A DNA stretch of 64,000 bases, taken from sequence record NC_047815.1. One strand, 5' to 3'. Numbering within the stretch: the first letter of the stretch is position 1; every line of letters starts with the position of its first letter. This document shows, in pieces, positions 1-64,000 of this stretch. The notes below the pieces were generated by a model that saw nothing but the letters and a program-made list of their open reading frames with translations, made no database searches and had not been told where the DNA came from. The position numbers were made by a program, and so were the translations under genes.

Positions 1-666
1 GACAACATGTGCCCCAACTGCAAGCAGCCTATGGCTTACAGTGAACTCAAGGTTCTCTATAAATCTCTTAAAGGATTTGTTGATGGGTTAATCGACAACC
101 TTGATGGAACATACAGCATCATCGATCTGAAATCAACTATGGTCAGTAAAGCACAGGACGGTTCGTTCTTTGTCAAGTACCATCGCTATCAGATCGCTAC
201 CTACGCCTACATCTTGTCAAAGCGTTATGGCTACAACATTGTGGACTACACGCTTGTGTATGTACCTCGTGATAATCCCAAGAAGTTTGTGGAGAAGTCA
301 TTTGTCTACGACGAGAAAGAGGCACGAGCAGCGCGTGACTTTATGATGAAGCAGATCAATGCATGGGATGCAACGATCAAGTCTCTGCGCAAGGGTGATG
401 CCAAGTACGCAATCAAACACAAGCCATGCCGTTCTGAGAAATATTATTGGGATGAGTTTCATGGCTATGATGAATGCCCTTTTTTGAACTACTGCTTTAT
501 TGAATCTCGCCTTACGGAATTCCTTGAGCGTCTTGAACAGACAATCATGGCAAATCCTGACATGACCTACGCTGAGGTTGTTCGCCCACAAGCTGAACCG
601 CAACAGGGTCTTGTCAAAAAGAAATTTCGAGAGAAGACCAAAGTCGTCAAGCAGTTTGAACTATGA
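1..666 (+). CDS. Cas4-like PD-(D/E)XK exonuclease, 5'-truncated by window edge
   Basis: Frame open from base 1; GFVDGL...IIDLKST...QIATYAY nuclease motifs; C-terminal Cys cluster (KPC...ECPFLNYC). Confidence 0.75.
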   Translation, partial: DNMCPNCKQPMAYSELKVLYKSLKGFVDGLIDNLDGTYSIIDLKSTMVSKAQDGSFFVKYHRYQIATYAYILSKRYGYNIVDYTLVYVPRDNPKKFVEKSFVYDEKEARAARDFMMKQINAWDATIKSLRKGDAKYAIKHKPCRSEKYYWDEFHGYDECPFLNYCFIESRLTEFLERLEQTIMANPDMTYAEVVRPQAEPQQGLVKKKFREKTKVVKQFEL

Positions 667-5890: not shown

Positions 5891-6925
5891 ATGAAGAATA
5901 AATCTAACCTGACAGGTGGCCAGATAGAAAGCGTCATGGACACCCTGCTCCACGATTGTCTGCGCGAGATCGTGGAGAGCACTGATGTGTTTGACGTTCA
6001 ACTGACCTACTTGTTGAGCATGATCACGCTGAATAAAAAGCGTAAGCCACACAATGCTTCGAATCGCGACCGTGCTATCAGCTTGCTTATCCGAGCACTG
6101 AGCAGTCCGCGTGAAGAAAAGATGCAGTACATAATGGAACTGAAAATGGAGCGAAACTTCATTTATATGTTCCTGCAAAATGTAATTAACCGCTACTATG
6201 GACAGTATGTTGAACTCTACAGAAAGTTCATCTGCACCAAAGATCCTATAGCGCGTAAAACTTATGGCAAACAGCTTGATGCGTTTGTTCGTACCGTTGG
6301 CGCCAAGAACAGATCCAGTTTCTTTGTTGCGCTGAACAATCTCAATGACCTTATGCCGCACTTCACTGAATACTTCCATTCAGTTGTTGATGACTTCTAT
6401 CGACTGTGTACGGCACAAGCCAAGTTTTATGTCGATACCAATAAAGGTAAGCAGTACGATACCAAAGACGTCAAGCAGAACTTTTTACGCAACGTCATTA
6501 TTGCTATCAACAAGTATGATTCATCGCGTGGTGCGATTGTGTCATACGTCAAGTGGTGGATCTTGAACGCACAGACCTGTAGCTCGTCAGAACACGAGTA
6601 TGGCATTTCGTATACAATACCGCAGACCCAGAGGAAAAAGCTGGCAAGCGGTCAAGATACCACCTCAGTGAATTTCTCTGTTAGTCTTGATGCACCTACA
6701 AGCGAATCAGATGAAGGGATGGACGCATCTTTGCATCACAAGGTCAGTGATAGCCATAACCTTGAAGACGCAGTAGACAGCGGAAGACGTGCTGAGAAAC
6801 TGGGGCTGTTAATAAAGCGTATCGATCCCATGGGAATCGCGCGCCTCACAATGGACATACCTGAGGTGTTCGAACAGGAAGAACGTGAGTTGATGCGTAA
6901 ATATATGCTCCAGCAGGGCCTGTAA
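5891..6925 (+). CDS. phage RNA polymerase sigma factor (sigma70 family)
   Basis: Region-2-like LRNVIIAINKYDSSRGAIVSYVKWWI, followed by region-3-like SVSLDAP. Confidence 0.8.
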   Translation: MKNKSNLTGGQIESVMDTLLHDCLREIVESTDVFDVQLTYLLSMITLNKKRKPHNASNRDRAISLLIRALSSPREEKMQYIMELKMERNFIYMFLQNVINRYYGQYVELYRKFICTKDPIARKTYGKQLDAFVRTVGAKNRSSFFVALNNLNDLMPHFTEYFHSVVDDFYRLCTAQAKFYVDTNKGKQYDTKDVKQNFLRNVIIAINKYDSSRGAIVSYVKWWILNAQTCSSSEHEYGISYTIPQTQRKKLASGQDTTSVNFSVSLDAPTSESDEGMDASLHHKVSDSHNLEDAVDSGRRAEKLGLLIKRIDPMGIARLTMDIPEVFEQEERELMRKYMLQQGL

Positions 6926-6985: not shown

Positions 6986-8248
6986 ATGGGACGTGGATTT
7001 GACGCCATTCCAGACAATAGCTCACGCGATAACTTGCGTGAAGGTGATATTTTTGAAATCTACCCACTAGCAAAGAAAGCAAACAACACATGGGTGTCGT
7101 TGCGTCTTCTGCCTGGCGATCTGCTGCCGATTAAAAAGCACTGGATTCGCATCATGGGTGGCAAAGACAAAGATAAAGCCATCAAGATTCCACGTATGTG
7201 TGTTAGCTTTGACCCAGACAATCAAGGTCAAGAACTGCGCGGCATGAAGTGTCCTTACTGTGGCATCGAACATGGTAATGATGAGTCCGGCGCACCAGCA
7301 CAGTACGATTTCAAATGGTATGCTCAAGCGATTGTTCGTGATCTGCAAGCAGCCAAGCCTAAGCGTGTTGCACAGCATACCAAGAAAGAAAAGCAGACAG
7401 GCAAGAAAGAAAAGACCAGTGAAAGCTGGACGCCAGTTGTTGCTATCGGTATGTCAAATGCAATGGCGGGCAAGATTCGTCAGATGGGTGAACGTAACTT
7501 TGCTCAGGTCAAAGACAAAAAGTCTGGTCAAAAGATCAAGAAAGCGTTTCCTATCACTGATGCAAAGTACGGTATCGATATTGATATTAAGTACAGCCCG
7601 AAAGCTGCGCCTGCTGATCGTTACTCGTTCGAGAAAGGTGAACGTACACCTCTGACCGAAGAAGAACGTGAATATCTGACCTGGGACTTTGATAACTGGG
7701 AAGAGATCTATAATCTGCTTGGTCGTCTCGATGAAAAAGGCGCGTTGGCTGACTTTAAAAAGATGGACGTTATCGGCGGTGAATCTACCGAGTCAGATGA
7801 TGACGACGATGACGACGATGATGACGACGATATGGCGCTTGGCCGTAAGAAGAAAGGCAAAGCTGATAAGTCGTCCAAGAAAAAGAAACGTTCGTTGGAC
7901 GATGACGACGAAGACGATGATGAAGACGAAGATGATCTGCCTAAGAGCAAGAAGAAAGGCAAGTCCTCCAAGACTTCTAAAACAACCAAGTCTAAGCGTT
8001 TGCTTGACGACGACGAAGACGACGATGAGGATGATGAGCCTAAGAAGAAAAAGTCGTCCAAACTCAAGTCCAAGTCTTCTGTGAAGAAGAAAAAGAAAAC
8101 CGTTCTTGACGACGATGAAGATGAAGACGACGCGCCGAAGAAGAAAAAGAAATCTTCCAGCAAGTCGGTCAAGTCTTCCTCAGTGAAGAAAAAGAAAAAG
8201 TCTTCTGATGACGATGAACCCGTCAAGAAGAAAAAGAAAAAGAAGTAA
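6986..8248 (+). CDS. gp32-like single-stranded DNA-binding protein with long D-block/K-block tail
   Basis: LRLLP...HW...C...CPYC Zn-site pattern as in T4 gp32; next to UvsX; last ~155 aa low complexity. Confidence 0.7.
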   Translation: MGRGFDAIPDNSSRDNLREGDIFEIYPLAKKANNTWVSLRLLPGDLLPIKKHWIRIMGGKDKDKAIKIPRMCVSFDPDNQGQELRGMKCPYCGIEHGNDESGAPAQYDFKWYAQAIVRDLQAAKPKRVAQHTKKEKQTGKKEKTSESWTPVVAIGMSNAMAGKIRQMGERNFAQVKDKKSGQKIKKAFPITDAKYGIDIDIKYSPKAAPADRYSFEKGERTPLTEEEREYLTWDFDNWEEIYNLLGRLDEKGALADFKKMDVIGGESTESDDDDDDDDDDDDMALGRKKKGKADKSSKKKKRSLDDDDEDDDEDEDDLPKSKKKGKSSKTSKTTKSKRLLDDDEDDDEDDEPKKKKSSKLKSKSSVKKKKKTVLDDDEDEDDAPKKKKKSSSKSVKSSSVKKKKKSSDDDEPVKKKKKKK

Positions 8249-13804: not shown

Positions 13805-15262
13805 ATGAGCATCATTTCATTATCGGCCACAGCCGCACAGAAGGACGCTGCCGTCTATTTGTTTGGCTCTAAAGGGCACAGCATTATCGCTGCTATTGAA
13901 GCACTGGCTAAGTCCAAAGAACTCAACACTCCTCATCTGAATGGTCTGATGGCCATGCTGAAAGAAGCGGAAGATGATGAGATCATCAAGTTCAAAAACA
14001 GCGCTGGTGGCAAAAAGTCTATTGAGGCTGCAAAGCAGTTAGTTACGGCCAAGACTCTGGTAACCAGCATCAAGGCGCTGCGTGCTGTTAAGGTTCCGTC
14101 TAAGTGGATTCCTAATCACGATGACGTCAAGAACCAAGCTGTATCTGAAACCGTTGTGCATCGCGCTACTGGTCGCGGTACTCGTCCGAAGAAAGCTGAA
14201 CAGATGGTAAATCCTCAGGCACCTGAAGCAGAGGAGATTGATGACTACGCACAGTACGCAGACATTAAAAATCTAGCTGCCAAAGTTCAGGACGCTCTCG
14301 AAGAAGATCATGAGATGGACGTCAAGATTACTGGTCATGCTGCGAAAGGTAAAGGTTCTTCTGCATATATGGAGGTTAAACAAGGGCGTCGTGTATTAGG
14401 TTCAATCTTTGTTCCTTACGCCGGTCGTCAAGTCCGCAGTGGTGAGTGGTTTAACGCGTCCGAAATCACGATGCAAGTCGAAAGTTTCGAACACAACGAC
14501 ATGGTTTATGATAAGATGAAGGGCTTAGGTCTTATCGACGTTGCTGGGTCAATCGCTGACAAGTTTGCAGAGCTTGCAGAGAAAGCTAACAAAGGTCCAG
14601 ATACAACTTCTCGTCGTAAAGATGGTGCTCGTATGGAAGCAGTAACCAGCGATTACCCTAACAGTTTTAGAATTGACCCAGAGCGTAACCCTGGATTAAT
14701 TGCTAAGATTGATCCTTACTTTAATAAAATTTCAGGCAAGAAAAACAGATCTGTTCAAGCCCGAGGTATTGTCAACTTCTCGTTTGCTACCAAACGTGAT
14801 ATGAACAGCGTGATTAAACAGTTTGACCTGACTTTGAACGCTATCGGTGATGCATTCTATCACCCACCAAGAGTTGTTGGCAGCGTAGTGCCTAGTAAAA
14901 CTGCGGCCAAACGCACTACGACAAATTCAGACCTGTTTACGATCGGTAACGGTGCTACTACCGTTAAATCTGTCAAGCGTGTCAATAACGGTGGCATTGA
15001 AATTCAATTCGCTGGTCCGAAGCCTTCATCAGTTCTCGTCAGTACAGAAGATGAATGGTTAGTAGTTGAGAACAAGCGTGGCGGTCAGAGTGGTTGGGAC
15101 GTTGCTGCGGAATTCTTGAACAAAGCAATCGTTGCCGCAGGTTCTTCTGTTGTTGAGCAGTCAGACCAAGCGGGCTATGAAGGATTTAAGCTGCCTAATG
15201 ATGCGGAAGTTGATAAGGTTATTGCTTATCTCGCCAAACTTAAAATCAACGCAAAAAAGTAA
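13805..15262 (+). CDS. 485-aa protein with N-terminal SIISLS tag, candidate virion protein
   Basis: GAGG SD; starts MSIISLSAT; ends GCA AAA AAG TAA. Confidence 0.75.
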   Translation: MSIISLSATAAQKDAAVYLFGSKGHSIIAAIEALAKSKELNTPHLNGLMAMLKEAEDDEIIKFKNSAGGKKSIEAAKQLVTAKTLVTSIKALRAVKVPSKWIPNHDDVKNQAVSETVVHRATGRGTRPKKAEQMVNPQAPEAEEIDDYAQYADIKNLAAKVQDALEEDHEMDVKITGHAAKGKGSSAYMEVKQGRRVLGSIFVPYAGRQVRSGEWFNASEITMQVESFEHNDMVYDKMKGLGLIDVAGSIADKFAELAEKANKGPDTTSRRKDGARMEAVTSDYPNSFRIDPERNPGLIAKIDPYFNKISGKKNRSVQARGIVNFSFATKRDMNSVIKQFDLTLNAIGDAFYHPPRVVGSVVPSKTAAKRTTTNSDLFTIGNGATTVKSVKRVNNGGIEIQFAGPKPSSVLVSTEDEWLVVENKRGGQSGWDVAAEFLNKAIVAAGSSVVEQSDQAGYEGFKLPNDAEVDKVIAYLAKLKINAKK

Positions 15263-15309: not shown

Positions 15310-15642
15310 GTGGATGAGTTGTCCGAGATGCAGCCTCGCAAGTTCAGTAAGCTGAATAGCTTTGATCGATATAGCTACATGAAGGCACTGCGTGATATGG
15401 TGCACGATGCCATGCCTGCTGATGCCGACATACAAGTTGTATTGACTGACAACGATACGCGTCTGACGATCAGTAATGGTCGTCGCAAGACCTATCAGTT
15501 CTACATCAAAGGCAATAGCTGGATCATGTACGATCAGTCTGACAAATCCGAATCAAAGATGGGTGATTCCATCGATGTTTCTGAATTGATTGAGGTTGCA
15601 CATGAAACAGCAAACACCTCAAGTCTAATCAAGTTCAAATAA
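15310..15642 (+). CDS. hypothetical protein, possibly the -1 frameshift extension of the upstream gene
   Basis: No clear SD before GTG 15310; frame open back through the upstream slippery heptamer. Confidence 0.65.
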   Translation: MDELSEMQPRKFSKLNSFDRYSYMKALRDMVHDAMPADADIQVVLTDNDTRLTISNGRRKTYQFYIKGNSWIMYDQSDKSESKMGDSIDVSELIEVAHETANTSSLIKFK

Positions 15643-57544: not shown

Positions 57545-60526
57545 ATGACCGATCAAAACACTAACGGTTCAGCGAAGTCTAGTGCTGAGGAACAACAGCG
57601 CGTGATTGACCAGAACCGTCACAACACAGCGGCAGCCAGTCAAGATAAGACTGCACTGTTTGTTGTGCTTGCCCCAACCAATGCTGACAACGAAGTTAGC
57701 AACGTTGATTGCAAAGGCGATTTCTTTGCGCGGCAGCTTGAAACAAAAGCAATTGACCGTCTGCCTGACATGTTGAGTCATGTTAGTCAGGGTCTGAAAG
57801 CACAGCACTCCGCATACGATTTACTGCTGCCTCAAAACGGCGTGCCTACTTCTATCGATGCGCGTGTGCAATTGAATGAGCAGTACGACGCCAAGATCGT
57901 TCGCTATACTGTAAACGTTTCAAAGTCGGCATTGATGCAACGTCTCAGCATGGCAATCTTCGATGTTGCTGGTGACCGTAACATCTATGACGTAGCAGCA
58001 CAGTACGGTATTCACGCTATTGTCCTCTCAGATGACAAACAAGCTGTAAATGTACTGCGTGAGTTAGAGTCTCAGCTTGTAGCGTCTAAAGCTGACTTTA
58101 ACTCGGTAATCGATATTGATGATGACGCGCTGAATACCGTGCTGATCAATGTCAACACATTGCCTGCTAATCCGAGCGTGCTTATCGAAGGCGTGCGTCG
58201 TACTTTCGCAATTCAAAATGCTAACGGCCAGTTGCTGGCACCGTCTAAAATTGGAGAACAAACTGTGGTAGATAAAAACAATGGTCCTGTAGATCTCGAC
58301 GAAGATAACTTTGAATCCGTTGATCAGGACAACGAGCAGTCCGACGAAGAAGAAGTGGCAACGGGCCGTGCGCTGCTGGGCTATCAAGCTGATAGCCTGA
58401 CTCAAGAGCAAAAGATTGAAGCTCTGACCGCTATCGATTATGATTGTTCCGAGATGGACGAAGAAGCAATCGACGAAGCGTTTTTGGTTGAGCAAGAGAA
58501 GTTCCTCGACAGCGAAGACGAAGACTCAGAAGAAGAATCTGATGAAGAATCAGAAGAAGCCGAAGACTTCGACGCTGCTGGTGAAATCACTGCTATCCTT
58601 GAGCAGTACGGTGATGACCGTGACCAGATCAAACGTCTGGTGCGTGCTGCTGAACTGAAAGTGCTGGTAGCCGATACTGCTGAAACGCTGGCTGCTAAAC
58701 TGATTGCTCATGTTGAAGACATGAACGAAGAACAGTTTGCCGAATTCCTGACTGATCTGATTGCTGCCGTTGAAGGCAAGCCTGTTGACGTTGCGCCGCT
58801 TAACGAGTGGTTCGATGATACCGACTCTACCGACGAAGAAGAAGACGAAGAGTCCGAAGATGAAGATGAGCAGGACGAAGATGAAGACGAAGATGAGCAG
58901 CAATCTGCCATCGACGCTATTACCGACCCGCTTGATTACTTCGACTATGCTGGTGGTGACCTGACTCCTGAACAACGTATCTCTGCGGTTGAAGCGATGG
59001 GTCACTCCACAGAAGGCCTGAACATCATCAAAGTGATGAAGCTGTTTAACCGTCTGAAAGAAGAAGTATCGCCAGAAACTCTGGACGAAGAAGACGAGCA
59101 GGACGCTCTGCAAGTTCAAGCAGACCTCGACGAAGAAGAGGAGATTGCAGACGAGTCAGAAGACGTAGTTAAGGCGCGTGCGTATCTCGCTGCTGCCGCT
59201 GCTGATGACCTGTCTATCATCGCCGAACTGGTTGGTGCAGATGCAACTGACCTCGACGAAGAACAGACTATCGAAGCCGTGTTGTTTGAAGGTGATATTG
59301 ATAATCTGATCGCTGCTGCTGATACGTACGGTGTTGAAGCTGACTCCGATATCTCCTACTGGGAATTGCTGGTGGCGTTCCTGGAAAGCTACTTCTCAGA
59401 AGATGATTCAGAAGAAGCGGACTTCGGACAAGATGAACCTCAGTCTGAAAACGAAAGCATCCTTGCTCAGGCTGGTGTTGAGAACAACTCTAATCCACTG
59501 GGTATCGAAGCTGTGTCTGGCGCCGACAACAGCGGTAGCTTGAAGTTCCTGCGTAATGCACACAACAGCCCAGCAGGTACGCTGATGAGCGTTGATATGC
59601 CGCAGTCGCTGATCATCAACTTCACGCTGACTGACCGTGCATCGTTTGAAGAATTCAACGAAGAACTGCAGGACGTTGACGGCCTGAACTATCGCTTCCC
59701 GTTTGTTCGTCCGAAGAAAGCGAACAAAGCACAAGGCGCGATGTACCAGCCTGCTGCGTCACTGATTGAAATCATGGAGCAGACTGCAACAAGCCGCTTC
59801 ATGGTCGACACTAATCAGTTTGATGTTGGTCAATTCAGCGAAGCACTGAATGCGTCACTGGCCACCAGCGTTGAGAACAACCTGTATGACGGTCTGCTGG
59901 AACCAGGCGCTAACCCGCACGAAGAAGGTCTCAAGCTCGGTGACTTTGTTGATGACGAAGAACTGACCGATGATGAAATCGCTCCTGAGTATTGGGACGA
60001 ATTCCAGGGTGCTGACTTGCCTATGCACGGTATCATCAACGGTTTCGTGGGCGTTCGTCCTGTGCAAATCGAAGAACTGCACAGCGTGTTGTGCCTCGGT
60101 GTGCTGAACGTTGCAGTGCCTGGTATCTGGGAACTGGACCGTAACAAAGTTGGTGAGCTGCTTGATGGCGCAATCAATGCTGTCAAATCTCTGCTGGCAC
60201 CGAACAACAACATCAAAGTACACGTGGGCTTCACTCTGAGTTCTGCCTCTCTGATTGTTGATGATACGCTGATGCATGTTGTTAATCATCTGCGTGATCA
60301 GGAAATGCTGTACAGCTACTCCTCTGCCGACTGTGCGTTGTTCGCAGACAACGAAGACGTGCTGGAAGCCGCTGCAAGTCTCGACAACAGCGAACGTCTG
60401 CCGCTTGAACTGCTGTCTACTGGCTTCGCTGGCAAGACGTTTGAAAACGGCGGTGACCTGACTATTCTGGTTCCTTGCTTTGAAATCGACGCTGACGAAG
60501 ACGAAGACGAAGCAGACGAAGAATAA
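57545..60526 (+). CDS. 993-aa highly acidic modular protein
   Basis: GAGGAG SD; short helical modules separated by D/E tracts. Confidence 0.85.
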   Translation: MTDQNTNGSAKSSAEEQQRVIDQNRHNTAAASQDKTALFVVLAPTNADNEVSNVDCKGDFFARQLETKAIDRLPDMLSHVSQGLKAQHSAYDLLLPQNGVPTSIDARVQLNEQYDAKIVRYTVNVSKSALMQRLSMAIFDVAGDRNIYDVAAQYGIHAIVLSDDKQAVNVLRELESQLVASKADFNSVIDIDDDALNTVLINVNTLPANPSVLIEGVRRTFAIQNANGQLLAPSKIGEQTVVDKNNGPVDLDEDNFESVDQDNEQSDEEEVATGRALLGYQADSLTQEQKIEALTAIDYDCSEMDEEAIDEAFLVEQEKFLDSEDEDSEEESDEESEEAEDFDAAGEITAILEQYGDDRDQIKRLVRAAELKVLVADTAETLAAKLIAHVEDMNEEQFAEFLTDLIAAVEGKPVDVAPLNEWFDDTDSTDEEEDEESEDEDEQDEDEDEDEQQSAIDAITDPLDYFDYAGGDLTPEQRISAVEAMGHSTEGLNIIKVMKLFNRLKEEVSPETLDEEDEQDALQVQADLDEEEEIADESEDVVKARAYLAAAAADDLSIIAELVGADATDLDEEQTIEAVLFEGDIDNLIAAADTYGVEADSDISYWELLVAFLESYFSEDDSEEADFGQDEPQSENESILAQAGVENNSNPLGIEAVSGADNSGSLKFLRNAHNSPAGTLMSVDMPQSLIINFTLTDRASFEEFNEELQDVDGLNYRFPFVRPKKANKAQGAMYQPAASLIEIMEQTATSRFMVDTNQFDVGQFSEALNASLATSVENNLYDGLLEPGANPHEEGLKLGDFVDDEELTDDEIAPEYWDEFQGADLPMHGIINGFVGVRPVQIEELHSVLCLGVLNVAVPGIWELDRNKVGELLDGAINAVKSLLAPNNNIKVHVGFTLSSASLIVDDTLMHVVNHLRDQEMLYSYSSADCALFADNEDVLEAAASLDNSERLPLELLSTGFAGKTFENGGDLTILVPCFEIDADEDEDEADEE

Positions 60527-60540
60527 AATCTGTTAATGTA

Positions 60541-60567
60541 GGGCGTAGCGCAACTGCGCCCTCATTT
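60541..60567 (+). terminator. stem-loop / probable terminator
   Basis: GGGCGTAG/CTGCGCCC stem, weak U-tract. Confidence 0.5.
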
Positions 60568-60579
60568 CTGGAGATTGTA

Positions 60580-61464
60580 ATGTCAGAACACAACAGCACT
60601 GAACAGCAAGACAGCGGTATGATGTTGCGTGACCACATCGTATCCCTTGAGCAGCGTGTTCGTAATCTGAGTGGTCAAGTGCAGGACTTATCTGCCGAGC
60701 TTGCTCAAACCTCTACGAACCACACCAACAAAAGCATTGAGTGCCGTCGCCTGACTCGTGTGTTAGCTGAACGTGATGCGCAACTGCAAGCAGCAACAGA
60801 CCTTGCCTCAGAACGTAAAACAGCACTTGAGCAAATGATTTCAGTCGGTGAAGCTCAACGGAAACTACGTGAGACGGAATCTCGCACTGCTGAAAAGCGT
60901 TACAATGAACTGCGTAACCAGCTTGCTAAGCCTGCTGGAAATCAGAAATTTGTTATGAACATGATAATTAACGCTGCACTGAACGAACTCCGTTGTGGTG
61001 TTGAGCGTGCGTTGTTCATGTACAGCACAGCAAATCCACGCAAGACCAATCGGCATCGTGCTGCCGAACAAGCACTGCGTGAGCAATTAACTTTGGAAGA
61101 CGTTCCAAGTTCTTTGCAGGATATTGTAAAAGTATACTGCGTTACAACAAACACGGCGTTTGATATTGATTCAGTCCTCAGCGAACTTAGCGCCCATGTG
61201 ATGTTGTGCCGAGAGACGATTGAAGACAGCGATACGGCGTCCGGCATGTTCAATCAAATGTCAAGCACGATAGTCGCACAGCGTGCCTTGCTTGAGCAAG
61301 ACGTAGCATCCGAACCTGACGACATTCTGTTTACGTTTATGTATGACGTAATCAACGATGACGAAAAGCCTTACGGCGATTCGCTGATTGATGCAGTAAC
61401 AAAATTGTGTGTACGTTACGCACAGCAATTAAGTTTCGAACTTCCAGTTTTATCTGACGAATAA
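60580..61464 (+). CDS. coiled-coil protein
   Basis: GGAG SD; heptad-rich N-terminal ~120 aa. Confidence 0.75.
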   Translation: MSEHNSTEQQDSGMMLRDHIVSLEQRVRNLSGQVQDLSAELAQTSTNHTNKSIECRRLTRVLAERDAQLQAATDLASERKTALEQMISVGEAQRKLRETESRTAEKRYNELRNQLAKPAGNQKFVMNMIINAALNELRCGVERALFMYSTANPRKTNRHRAAEQALREQLTLEDVPSSLQDIVKVYCVTTNTAFDIDSVLSELSAHVMLCRETIEDSDTASGMFNQMSSTIVAQRALLEQDVASEPDDILFTFMYDVINDDEKPYGDSLIDAVTKLCVRYAQQLSFELPVLSDE

Positions 61465-61476
61465 AAAATCAGAATA

Positions 61477-61486
61477 AATCTGTAAA
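61477..61486 (+). promoter_or_regulatory. AATCTGTAAA box
   Basis: Intergenic perfect copy. Confidence 0.6.
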
Positions 61487-61544
61487 TTGTAATTGAACCA
61501 CACACGGTAATTGTACCGCGACTATTAATCATCTGGAGTTTTAA

Positions 61545-62114
61545 ATGGCAAAGTCCACTAGCACTGCACTGGTAGCACCGACTCGTATCAACCGCATTTC
61601 TAAAAAGAGCGGTTCTATTTCACAGTCTGCTGCTAAAGCGTCTCAGATGCCGCACGATGTAACTATCACCGCTACTCAGGTTTACGATGTTCAGGGTTTC
61701 ATCACTGAACTGACTGCTGACAGCGTAACTATTCGTCACAAACGTGGCTTCGGTTCAAGCGCCCAGGTTCTGTCAACGTTCCCACGCAGTCAAGTTATCG
61801 AGCTGGTGGGTGATACCGGTACTTTCGGTAGCCTGAGTGTTCTGGGCAACGTGCCTGTTCGTACTCTGAAAGGTCAGTTGCTGTCGTTTAAGGGTACTCA
61901 AGTCATTGCTACTGACTTCGATACCAAAGAAGTTACCGTGCTGAACACAACCGTGCCTGGCGTGTCTATCACTTACGCTGTGAACGAAACTGCCGCTGCT
62001 AAAAAGTATGGCATTGCTGCTCCGACCAAAGGCAAGAAAGCTGACGCGAAAGCAGCGCCTGCTAAAGCTGCTAAAGGCGGTAAGCCAGTCAAGGCTGGTA
62101 AATCAAAAAAGTAA
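61545..62114 (+). CDS. basic protein with beta-rich core and K/A tail
   Basis: GGAG SD; ends TCA AAA AAG TAA. Confidence 0.8.
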   Translation: MAKSTSTALVAPTRINRISKKSGSISQSAAKASQMPHDVTITATQVYDVQGFITELTADSVTIRHKRGFGSSAQVLSTFPRSQVIELVGDTGTFGSLSVLGNVPVRTLKGQLLSFKGTQVIATDFDTKEVTVLNTTVPGVSITYAVNETAAAKKYGIAAPTKGKKADAKAAPAKAAKGGKPVKAGKSKK

Positions 62115-62141
62115 GTTCTGACGAAGATTTTTAATCGTCAG
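62105..62141 (+). other. candidate -1 programmed frameshift signal
   Basis: A AAA AAG heptamer, 6-nt spacer, CTGACGA/TCGTCAG hairpin. Confidence 0.5.
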
Positions 62142-62143
62142 TA

Positions 62144-62210
62144 AATCTGTAAAGTGTATTCGTCAAGGGCGTTGTTGTTTTAACAGCGTCCTCAAAAACA
62201 AATCTGTAAA
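62144..62210 (+). promoter_or_regulatory. two AATCTGTAAA boxes
   Basis: Perfect copies at 62144 and 62201, upstream of 62256. Confidence 0.6.
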
Positions 62211-62255
62211 CTTTATTCGAATCAAGTCGATTCTACTCAATAGGAAAAAGTTATC

Positions 62256-63047
62256 ATGGCAAAAGCTAAAGCAAATACCGCAACTATCGTTCTGGCAAAA
62301 ATCCTGGGTGTGTTCGTTGAGAACGCAAGCGACAAAGAAATCGCTGCTGCCCTGGCCGAAGCCGGTCTGACTGTTTCTGGTGGCAAAGTCGTTAAAGCTG
62401 ACAAAGCTGCCAAAGGCGGTAAAGGCAAAAAAGCTAAAGTGGCAACTGTTGAACAAATCGTTGCGGCTGTGAAAGAAGAAGAAGCAATCGACCTGACTGG
62501 CGTAAGCGAAGATGATCTGCGTGCTGCCGTTGTTAAGGCCAAGCTGTCTGCTGCTAAGAAAGCCAAAGCGCTGGACGAAGAAGCTCTGCTGGAGCTGCTG
62601 AACGAAGCGATGGGCGTCGAGTCTGACGAAGAAGAAGACGAAGACGACGAAGAAGACGAAGACGAAGAAGACGAGGACGAAGAAGAAGAAGAAGAAGACG
62701 ACTCGGACGATGAAGACGAAGACGAAGACGAAGACGAAGACGAAGACGAAGACGAAGACGACGAAGATGAAGATGAAGATGAGGACGAAGATGAAGATGA
62801 AGATGAGGACGAAGATGAACTCGACCTCGCTAATCTCGACGAAGACGAACTTCGCGCTCTGGTAATCGAACATAAACTGGCGCCTAAGAAAAAGGCTGCT
62901 AAGATGGACGAAGACGAACTTCGTGAACTGTGTGAAGCTCACTTCGGCGATGACGAAGATGAGGACGAAGAAGACGAAGACGAAGACGAGGACGAAGATG
63001 AAGACGAAGACTTCGACGATGAAGACGAAGACGAAGACGACGAATAA
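62256..63047 (+). CDS. extremely acidic protein with two 40-aa helical modules
   Basis: AGGA SD; ~65-residue near-pure D/E tract plus D/E tail. Confidence 0.85.
   Translation: MAKAKANTATIVLAKILGVFVENASDKEIAAALAEAGLTVSGGKVVKADKAAKGGKGKKAKVATVEQIVAAVKEEEAIDLTGVSEDDLRAAVVKAKLSAAKKAKALDEEALLELLNEAMGVESDEEEDEDDEEDEDEEDEDEEEEEEDDSDDEDEDEDEDEDEDEDEDDEDEDEDEDEDEDEDEDEDELDLANLDEDELRALVIEHKLAPKKKAAKMDEDELRELCEAHFGDDEDEDEEDEDEDEDEDEDEDFDDEDEDEDDE
62712..62759 (+). repeat. (GAAGAC)8 perfect tandem repeat encoding (ED)n
   Basis: Eight exact hexamers. Confidence 0.9.
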
Positions 63048-63241
63048 TAGCATCTAACGTGCTGCACTTCTGTAACTCTTAATCTGAGTCGCACAGAAAA
63101 AAGTTTGAAATTTCCTCGATAAAACTTGTAGACGTATGTTGAGAATGATAATGTACGTCTACAGGAAATCGAAACCCTGAACACTTTTGTTTTTAACTCG
63201 CGCACCACATACAGCGCAAATCAAAAATTCTGGAGAAGAAT

Positions 63242-63763
63242 ATGTCTAAGAAAGTTATCGCCGGTCTGAACAAAAACCTGAAAGCAATCGCTAAATCAGA
63301 AGCTGCCCTGACCAAAACTGTTAACGCCACCAGCAAAGAAATCGAAAACCTGGGCGCACAGCGTGCCGGTATCGAAGCGCAGATCGCTGAACTGTCTGGT
63401 GTTGCTGCTCCGGCTAAAGCGCCGAAAGCGCCGAAAGCTGCGAAAGCTGAGAAGCCTGCAAAAGCTGGTAAGAAAGAAAAAGCTGCTAAAGCTGAAAAGC
63501 CAGCTAAAGTGAAAAAAGAAAAAGCTGCTAAAGCTGAGAAACCTGCCAAGGCCGGTAAAGCTGCTAAAGCAGAAAAAGCTGCTAAGCCTGCTAAAGCAGA
63601 AAAAGCTGGCAAGAAAGTGAAAGCCGAAACCAAACCAGCTAAAGCTGACAAAGCTGCTAAAGGCAAAAAAGCTGACAAAGCTGCTAAGCCTGCTAAAGCC
63701 GGTAAAGCTGGTAAGAAAGCGAAAGCATCTGCTGACGAAGATTTCGATTTCGAAGTAGCATAA
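63242..63763 (+). CDS. histone H1/AlgP-like K/A/P-rich DNA-binding protein
   Basis: N-terminal coiled coil, KAAK/AEKPAK repeats, acidic-aromatic tip DEDFDFEVA. Confidence 0.75.
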   Translation: MSKKVIAGLNKNLKAIAKSEAALTKTVNATSKEIENLGAQRAGIEAQIAELSGVAAPAKAPKAPKAAKAEKPAKAGKKEKAAKAEKPAKVKKEKAAKAEKPAKAGKAAKAEKAAKPAKAEKAGKKVKAETKPAKADKAAKGKKADKAAKPAKAGKAGKKAKASADEDFDFEVA

Positions 63764-63801
63764 AAACTGCGGCGGGTGTTACGGCACCTGCGTAAAACAG
63801 A

Positions 63802-63838
63802 AGGGGTTGACACTGAATAAAAGGTGTTAACCCTTTTT
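63802..63838 (+). terminator. intrinsic terminator
   Basis: GGGTTGACAC/GTGTTAACCC stem then TTTTT. Confidence 0.8.
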
Positions 63839-63874
63839 GCATTCTATCAGAATTTTTACCTAGAAGGATTTACT

Positions 63875-64000
63875 GTGTCAGAACCCACTAACTTTCGCGC
63901 AGTGCTTGAATTGCGATTCTCACATGCAGCCGCTCTCGCACGAGCAATCTACACGCTGAAAAGTCACGCTGTGTTTGGTGGCATTGAACCCAACGAAGCA
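63875..64000 (+). CDS. hypothetical protein, 3'-truncated by window edge
   Basis: AAGGA SD, GTG start, frame open to end (MSEPTNFRAVLEL...). Confidence 0.6.
   Translation, partial: MSEPTNFRAVLELRFSHAAALARAIYTLKSHAVFGGIEPNEA

Follow-up and report, generated by a model that had tools for sequence, protein, structure and literature searches.

A conserved candidate −1 frameshift signal at the end of gp321 in Erwinia phage Yoloswag and its relatives, which would add a short acidic-aromatic tip to a basic protein

Does a gene that stops directly after a slippery heptamer make one protein or two? This question is raised by the 3′ end of gp321 (locus YOLOSWAG_320) in a 64,000-nucleotide stretch of sequence record NC_047815.1, analyzed at full length and hereafter called the window. 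The window is part of the Erwinia jumbo phage vB_EamM_Yoloswag (KY448244.1, 259,700 bp, genus Yoloswagvirus); positions 60500-63900 are 100% identical to that record, and record coordinates equal window coordinates plus 186,000. The initial annotation of the window had suggested that the basic ...KSKK end of gp321 can be exchanged for an acidic-aromatic tip by frameshifting, giving tagged and untagged isoforms. Our analysis supports this suggestion through 23 orthologous loci, a constrained tail and eight relatives that carry the tip in frame. With a probability of roughly three in four, we interpret the gp321 end as a conserved programmed −1 frameshift signal that would yield two isoforms from one gene.

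The gene ends in AAA TCA AAA AAG TAA, and on re-reading the sequence all coordinates first reported for this end proved exact (Table 1). The X_XXY_YYZ heptamer that a bacterial −1 frameshift signal requires is present as A_AAA_AAG in the zero frame of gp321. Translation of the −1 frame alone from position 62111 reproduced the V-S-S-D-E-D-F-stop that had been predicted, with the stop codon at 62132-62134 falling inside the loop of a downstream hairpin. This −1 piece has no start codon, which rules out the tail as an independent small open reading frame (ORF). When both alternative frames were inspected at the ends of the 99 complete annotated window genes, all located on the + strand, gp321 was the only one with a short out-of-frame extension ending in acidic and aromatic residues.

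Table 1. Coordinates of the features at and around the gp321 end (window positions).
Feature	Position	Strand	Remark
YOLOSWAG_320 (gp321), hypothetical protein	61545..62114	+	189 aa in zero frame; record annotation
AAGG, putative upstream element	62091..62094	+	10 nt upstream of heptamer; invariant in six Yoloswag-clade sequences
Candidate slippery heptamer A_AAA_AAG	62105..62111	+	zero frame: last two sense codons plus third base of preceding codon
Zero-frame stop TAA	62112..62114	+	directly 3′ of heptamer; would end the short, tip-less isoform
Putative −1 frame extension, V-S-S-D-E-D-F plus TAA	62111..62134	+	7 sense codons; acidic-aromatic tip; frame translated alone
Hairpin CTGACGA/TCGTCAG	62118..62141	+	7 bp; arms 62118-62124 and 62135-62141; 10-nt loop 62125-62134
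AAATCTGTAAA copies, probable promoter motif	61476-61486, 62143-62153, 62200-62210; also 5847, 6935, 32754, 60526, others		

In the mechanism that we propose, most ribosomes would decode TCA AAA AAG, terminate at TAA and release a 189-residue protein with a disordered Lys/Ala-rich tail ending in KK. Some ribosomes would slip back by one base on A_AAA_AAG, with the host lysine tRNA re-pairing in the −1 frame, read V-S-S-D-E-D-F and stop at the TAA in the loop of the small hairpin. The long isoform would consist of the same basic tail followed by a short acidic tip with a C-terminal phenylalanine. Equivalent dual decoding would take place in the gp321 orthologues of most related Erwinia, Dickeya and Yersinia jumbo phages. 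Of the heptamers tested in E. coli, A_AAA_AAG shifts most readily; it is also the dnaX site, and in enterobacteria one tRNA-Lys decodes both AAA and AAG (review PMC5009743). We found no phage-encoded tRNA-Lys: the window contains no tRNA gene, and the annotation of the record is limited to coding sequence features.

The strongest evidence comes from comparison with relatives. With gp321 as query, tblastn hit 59 records of phages that infect Erwinia, Dickeya, Yersinia and Pseudomonas and carry an orthologue, and a search of 5.8 billion proteins returned 28 clusters. DNA was examined for 19 phage loci and 12 metagenome contigs; the orthologue set (n = 31) stems from 20 phage records and 12 metagenome contigs, with one distant outlier (L034) left out. 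In 23 of the 31 orthologous loci the gene ends in NNA_AAA_AAG plus a stop, which is TAA in 22 cases and TAG in one. The codon preceding the two lysines is TCA, GCA, GTA or TTA, encoding S, A, V or L, and its third base is A in all 23. The heptamer is hence kept beyond what the protein sequence needs, as the preceding amino acid changes while the third base of its codon stays constant. Lysine codons in the 12 codons upstream of the heptamer vary freely (62 AAA, 48 AAG).

The sequence beyond the stop is conserved as well, at the level of the encoded peptide. In all 23 frameshift-type loci the −1 frame stays open for 7-10 codons after the heptamer. Most of these tails end in ...S/P-D-E-D-F; the Yersinia phage fHe-Yen9-02 has PDEQF and a distant metagenome contig ADDDCADF. 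Between the forced first Val and the tip lies a linker that varies widely (S, V, T, K, M, IK, SK, TA, TP and others), and its length always changes by whole codons. All 12 distinct tail ends close with Phe, encoded by TTT and TTC in a 6:6 ratio, and the preceding Asp is encoded by GAT or GAC. Over the four codons before the −1 stop, all four third positions vary, compared with two first and two second positions. The conservation of the heptamer and of a −1 frame DEDF in relatives, which the initial annotation had proposed to look for, is thus borne out in 23 of 31 loci, with the tip found in frame in the others.

These other eight loci, from the Dickeya phages JA13 and JA29, the Erwinia phage SNUABM_7, four metagenome contigs and PaBG, lack the heptamer-plus-stop. 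Here the zero frame itself encodes ...KKKK[GS]-x-D-E-[DN]-F, except in PaBG, which has a different acidic end. A similar division is seen among the 28 protein clusters, of which 9 end in the in-frame tip (...KKK[GS]xDEDF) and 19 in KK. Most family members with less than 50% identity have a basic stretch and then an acidic tip with F, L, M or Y among its final residues. Frameshift-type and in-frame states alternate on a rough neighbour-joining tree built from the beta domain, indicating that the family has switched between them several times. In the outlier L034, a metagenome contig carrying the distant relative P0066, the heptamer lies one codon before the last sense codon and the −1 tail ends in ...IDEL; the same device may be present here in diverged form.

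A second line of evidence is offered by the distribution of the heptamer over the genome. The decamer AAAAAAGTAA is found at two window positions, 15253 and 62105, where 0.36 copies are expected; 2 of 100 shuffles reach this count. As first noticed in the initial annotation, both copies are in frame and directly precede the stop of an annotated gene. To obtain expectations for in-frame heptamers, synonymous codons were shuffled. Inside the 99 window genes there is no in-frame A_AAA_AAG, against 7.1 ± 2.2 expected, and none of 300 shuffles gave zero; at gene ends there are two against 0.21 expected (2 of 300 shuffles reach two). Whole-genome counts were made on 319 proxy ORF genes, which recovered 85 of the 99 annotated window stops. 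They gave a single internal in-frame copy where 22.2 ± 4.4 are expected; the lowest count in 100 shuffles was 10. A genome-wide count of heptamers before stops, suggested at the outset, returned two copies, the gp321 and gp244 ends in this window, where 0.53 would be expected; as two or more also arose in 8 of 100 shuffles, this terminal count is weak by itself.

The avoidance is also visible in the dicodons. Of 34 AAA_AAG dicodons in the window just two, the terminal heptamers, are preceded by a codon ending in A, and AAA_AAA is nearly avoided (4 copies versus 51 of AAG_AAA). Yoloswag avoids the heptamer inside its genes, which is the pattern expected if the heptamer is shift-prone in the host. 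The sole internal in-frame copy of the genome lies early in gp224, a putative exonuclease gene (record 185590-186666) that runs into window positions 1-666; its heptamer is located just beyond the left edge of the window.

The other gene that ends in A_AAA_AAG plus TAA is gp244 (13805-15262). The −1 frame at its end has no stop for 127 codons and continues, without a change of frame, into annotated gp245 (15310-15642). SNUABM_1, AD1, SNUABM_5 and one metagenome contig have a single ORF in the homologous region. The Yoloswag −1 piece, with the stretch that the annotation treats as intergenic, can be aligned from its first residues onward to the C-terminal part of this ORF. As judged from these alignments, gp244 and gp245 derive from one ancestral gene, the two parts of which are placed in two frames by one frame change. 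The gp244 end could be a second programmed site, a lineage-specific break or a run-length error. A point in favor of a second programmed site is that the split coincides exactly with a heptamer and stop, although the genome nearly lacks the heptamer elsewhere. No further split was returned by an IMG/VR scan, which gave Yoloswag only, and a metagenome scan gave one single-ORF relative. Of the initial idea that both sites have sensible extensions and reflect a phage-wide device, the first half holds, as gp244 opens into gp245, while the second is limited by the occurrence of the split in Yoloswag alone.

A 7-bp stem starting 6 nt after the gp321 heptamer had been described as canonically placed, within the 5-9 nt spacing of dnaX/IS-type stimulators. 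The stem is present, with a spacer at 62112-62117, and when the 50 nt that follow the heptamer are folded, the minimum free energy structure is this very helix. In the Yoloswag clade (Yoloswag, SNUABM_5 and four metagenome contigs) the hairpin has two parts, an outer CTGAC/GTCAG and an inner GATT/AATC. Its 3′ arm GTCAG is invariant there while the surrounding bases vary, with insertions and deletions, and in the alignment of the six sequences 91.7% of cells are paired. The 5′ arm doubles as coding sequence for the S-D-E of the tail. Of 16 distinct orthologues, which are kin and not independent, 11 have a stem of 5 bp or more that begins 2-9 nt beyond the heptamer, versus 16-18% of controls. 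The alternative function as a terminator, which the initial annotation had named as a possible sole role of the hairpin, finds no backing: the + strand from 61300 to 62400 contains no terminator-like site, the stem is followed by TAAATCTG and not by the T run of an intrinsic terminator, and the hairpin has no Rfam match. A role of the hairpin as a downstream stimulator is plausible. The clade-specific AAGG upstream of the heptamer, found in the Yoloswag clade only, may act as a Shine-Dalgarno-like upstream stimulator, and we regard it as a lead; elements of this type occur in dnaX and some IS elements and are not obligatory.

Several observations weigh against the interpretation of the gp321 end as a programmed frameshift. 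Many of them concern stimulation. The energy of the stem (−8.1 kcal/mol, z = −1.1) is ordinary, and 48% of the 50-nt stretches after other window stops fold at least as well. No covariation is seen, the stem being invariant across the six clade sequences. In the Alexandra clade a different, A-U-rich hairpin (AAAGTC/GACTTT) takes its place 4-5 nt after the heptamer. The hairpin thus exists and is kept in the Yoloswag clade, and a role as canonical stimulator is no more than plausible. The stop in frameshift-type loci most often stands in the context TAAT, an efficient terminator, which argues against stimulation by slow termination. Lineages with the tip in frame would make the long form only, so that a fixed ratio of two forms is not essential to the family. 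A literature search found no proteomic, ribosome-profiling or transcript data on these phages; the virion proteomics of PaBG has no entry for the gp321 homologue, and the search brought up no proteome of Yoloswag, Y3, Alexandra or the Dickeya phages. Finally, the sequence by itself does not separate ribosomal from transcriptional slippage.

This last point leads to the first of the alternative explanations. Both kinds of slippage are treated in the same review (PMC5009743). If RNA polymerase slips on the run of six A, shifted mRNAs would give an identical long isoform from a homopolymer site, and the comparative evidence on the tip would fit equally well. The run is exactly six A, and never longer, in 23 of 23 loci, whereas efficient bacterial sites of transcriptional slippage have longer runs. 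In the same 23 loci the G after the run is invariant and the X_XXY_YYZ register constant, features relevant to a ribosome and not to a polymerase. In addition, the depletion of A_AAA_AAG inside genes is frame-specific and points to a hazard in translation. On the strength of the six-A length, the invariant G, the fixed register and the frame-specific depletion, we favor the ribosome as the agent of the shift. Slippage by the polymerase as the main source of the long isoform appears unlikely to us, although a low level of it may contribute.

A second alternative dispenses with recoding altogether. The KK end would then be plain, the heptamer a by-product of a lysine-rich tail, and the downstream bases an RNA or DNA element such as a terminator, a processing site or an upstream element of a promoter. 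A lysine-rich tail does make an AAA AAG end likely, and a shifty heptamer is least costly at the end of a gene. The promoter-like AAATCTGTAAA is conserved within 1-20 nt downstream in all relatives, and the unremarkable stem energy suits this view too. Such a scheme accounts poorly for a third base that is always A in front of the lysines while the amino acid changes, for downstream variation that falls mainly on third positions of the −1 frame around an invariant Phe, and for a linker that grows and shrinks by whole codons. It also leaves aside the eight relatives that carry the peptide in the zero frame, and neither a terminator-like site nor an Rfam family was found. A peptide that is kept through synonymous change, in whole-codon lengths, and that reappears in the zero frame is unlike a non-coding element, and recoding is strongly supported on this basis; we consider its absence very improbable. 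Least credible of all, and close to negligible, is a mis-sequenced A run or a recently broken in-frame ancestor with a relic tail, since, error-prone as homopolymer runs are and despite the existence of in-frame relatives, the same arrangement recurs in 23 independently assembled loci from several laboratories and metagenomes, and the tail survives under protein-level constraint in orthologues down to ~45% protein identity, where a relic would have decayed.

The proposed programmed −1 frameshifting at gp321 can be compared with several described systems. The mechanism is known, the bacterial heptamer-type −1 frameshift with dnaX as its type case; the novelty lies in the gene family and phage group concerned and in recoding that would append a motif of 7-10 residues. 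The literature that we searched mentions no frameshift in these phages beyond a general remark on dnaX. E. coli dnaX (tau/gamma) shares with gp321 the heptamer A_AAA_AAG, enterobacterial translation and two isoforms of one gene, predicted in the case of gp321, that differ at the C-terminus, along with a stop very near the shift site and a hairpin a few bases downstream (PMC5009743). The outcome is reversed. In dnaX it is the shifted frame that soon reaches a stop and yields the shorter product, whereas in gp321 the zero frame ends at once and the shift would add 7 residues. In addition, dnaX has a strong upstream Shine-Dalgarno-like element and a strong stem-loop with no clear gp321 counterpart, and the proteins are unrelated.

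In purpose, the closest known case is the capsid gene 10A/10B of T7 and T3, where a −1 shift near the end of a phage ORF gives a minor isoform with a C-terminal extension (PMC5009743). The T7 heptamer is different, however, its extension much longer and its stimulator far downstream, and gp321 is no recognized capsid protein. In size of the extension, Bacillus subtilis cdd comes closest, with a −1 shift at ...CGA_AAG, a lysine AAG near the gene end and a short C-terminal extension (PMC5009743). The cdd frameshift is described as incidental in that review. In contrast, gp321 has a full heptamer and an extension conserved across genera, and the extension carries a conserved motif. The lambda-type G/GT system is likewise a conserved −1 frameshift near the end of a phage gene; it sets the ratio of short to long product, and its parts are rearranged in some relatives (PMC5009743). 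It is situated, however, between the genes for tail tube and tape measure, and the shift supplies an entire domain, compared with the 7-10 residues that gp321 would gain. A role of gp321 as a tail assembly chaperone of the G/GT type does not fit its neighbors, the location of the tail genes more than 100 kb away on the opposite strand or the 7-residue extension.

For the tip itself, the likeness suggested at first was to the C-terminal tails of single-stranded DNA-binding proteins (SSB), including T7 gp2.5. These tails, too, end in a short, disordered acidic tip with an aromatic last residue. The gp2.5 tail contacts polymerase and helicase (PMC4124056), and its C-terminal phenylalanine is essential for a polymerase function, as that paper relates from its reference 30. 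The gp321 tip differs in that it follows a long basic tail and would be supplied by recoding. Neither Pfam nor a PDB fold search of two models (E ≤ 0.001) revealed an OB fold or SSB signature in gp321. The resemblance is accordingly one of kind only: the acidic, disordered, aromatic-ended tip is shared and the fold is not detected. The annotated putative SSB of Yoloswag, gp238 (6986-8248), ends in five lysines (...AAA AAG AAG TAA) and not in the usual acidic tip; there is no acidic out-of-frame extension after its end.

The remaining features of the gp321 product offer few leads to known families. A beta-rich domain at about residues 37-146 is followed by the disordered Lys/Ala-rich basic tail that ends in ...KAGKSKK. 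In the AlphaFold2 model the predicted local distance difference test (pLDDT) score is ~90 at residues 40-150 and below 50 at 162-189. The protein matches PHROG 22271, a family of unknown function. Pfam gave no matches for gp319-gp323, gp244 and gp245, and PHROGs gave families of unknown function only. No PDB entry matched the two AlphaFold2 models (pLDDT 74.6 and 79.9) in the fold search at the threshold given above, and a BFVD search with models of the gp321 family matched only relatives from the same phage group (PaBG group).

More can be drawn from the genes around it. The neighbors of gp321 encode acidic and basic hypothetical proteins and include gyrase/topoisomerase genes. The DEDF echo that had been noted in a neighbor is indeed there: gp323 (63242-63763) ends in ...ADEDFDFEVA after a Lys/Ala-rich stretch. 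It extends to gp322 (62256-63047), the orthologues of which end in ...DEDFDDEDEDEDDE in all relatives examined (L002-L032), so that the DEDF motif is common to three adjacent genes. In a naturally in-frame long form (P0015), AlphaFold2 predicts the tail including SDEDF to be disordered, with pLDDT ~40. Docking of the tip on its own protein is not predicted, as this tail stays disordered, and in the model the tip looks like a free short linear motif that does not fold back on its own domain. By analogy, it likely serves as a docking motif, or a charge- or self-masking motif, common to the three adjacent proteins. As a separate observation, gp319 (993 residues, acidic) and gp321-gp323 form a block of extremely acidic or basic proteins of unknown function that adjoins gyrase/topoisomerase genes.

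A broader picture may be sketched, which we offer as speculation and would sooner doubt than accept. The clade-wide heptamer plus stop might dose DEDF on a basic, possibly DNA-associated protein, the motif being recognized by a shared docking partner of a chromatin-like module of three genes. Repeated on/off switching would tune the share of tipped protein, and in Yoloswag the same device would have been reused to join gp244 and gp245.

The region downstream of gp321 displays further features of its own. The AAATCTGTAAA motif has 12 copies in the window at up to one mismatch, where 1.9 are expected, and all but one are on the + strand. A start codon follows most copies at a distance of 44-70 nt, and every relative retains the motif immediately downstream of the gp321 tail. 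From this placement it is probably a phage promoter. Yoloswag encodes its own sigma-70-like protein, gp237 (5891-6925). Between two of the promoter-like motifs upstream of gp322 there is a strong hairpin of 12 bp (62166-62192). Folding of 62090-62200 gave z = −4.6, and the 12-bp hairpin, which lacks a T run, does not qualify as a classical terminator; in relatives its position is taken by another strong hairpin.

Public records end all these genes at the zero-frame stop, and the tipped isoform is consequently missing from every entry of the family. If confirmed, gp321 would provide a clean and phylogenetically well-supported −1 frameshift outside tail chaperones and capsid proteins, in which recoding is used to add or withhold a very short linear motif and not a domain. 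The ~20-fold depletion of the heptamer in Yoloswag genes is independent evidence that it is a translation hazard in Erwinia, and such depletion is useful for annotating other enterobacterial phages. The presence of DEDF in three adjacent genes points to a common partner. With relatives that carry the signal and relatives that do not, the family forms a natural series in which the role of the tip and its dose can be approached by observation.

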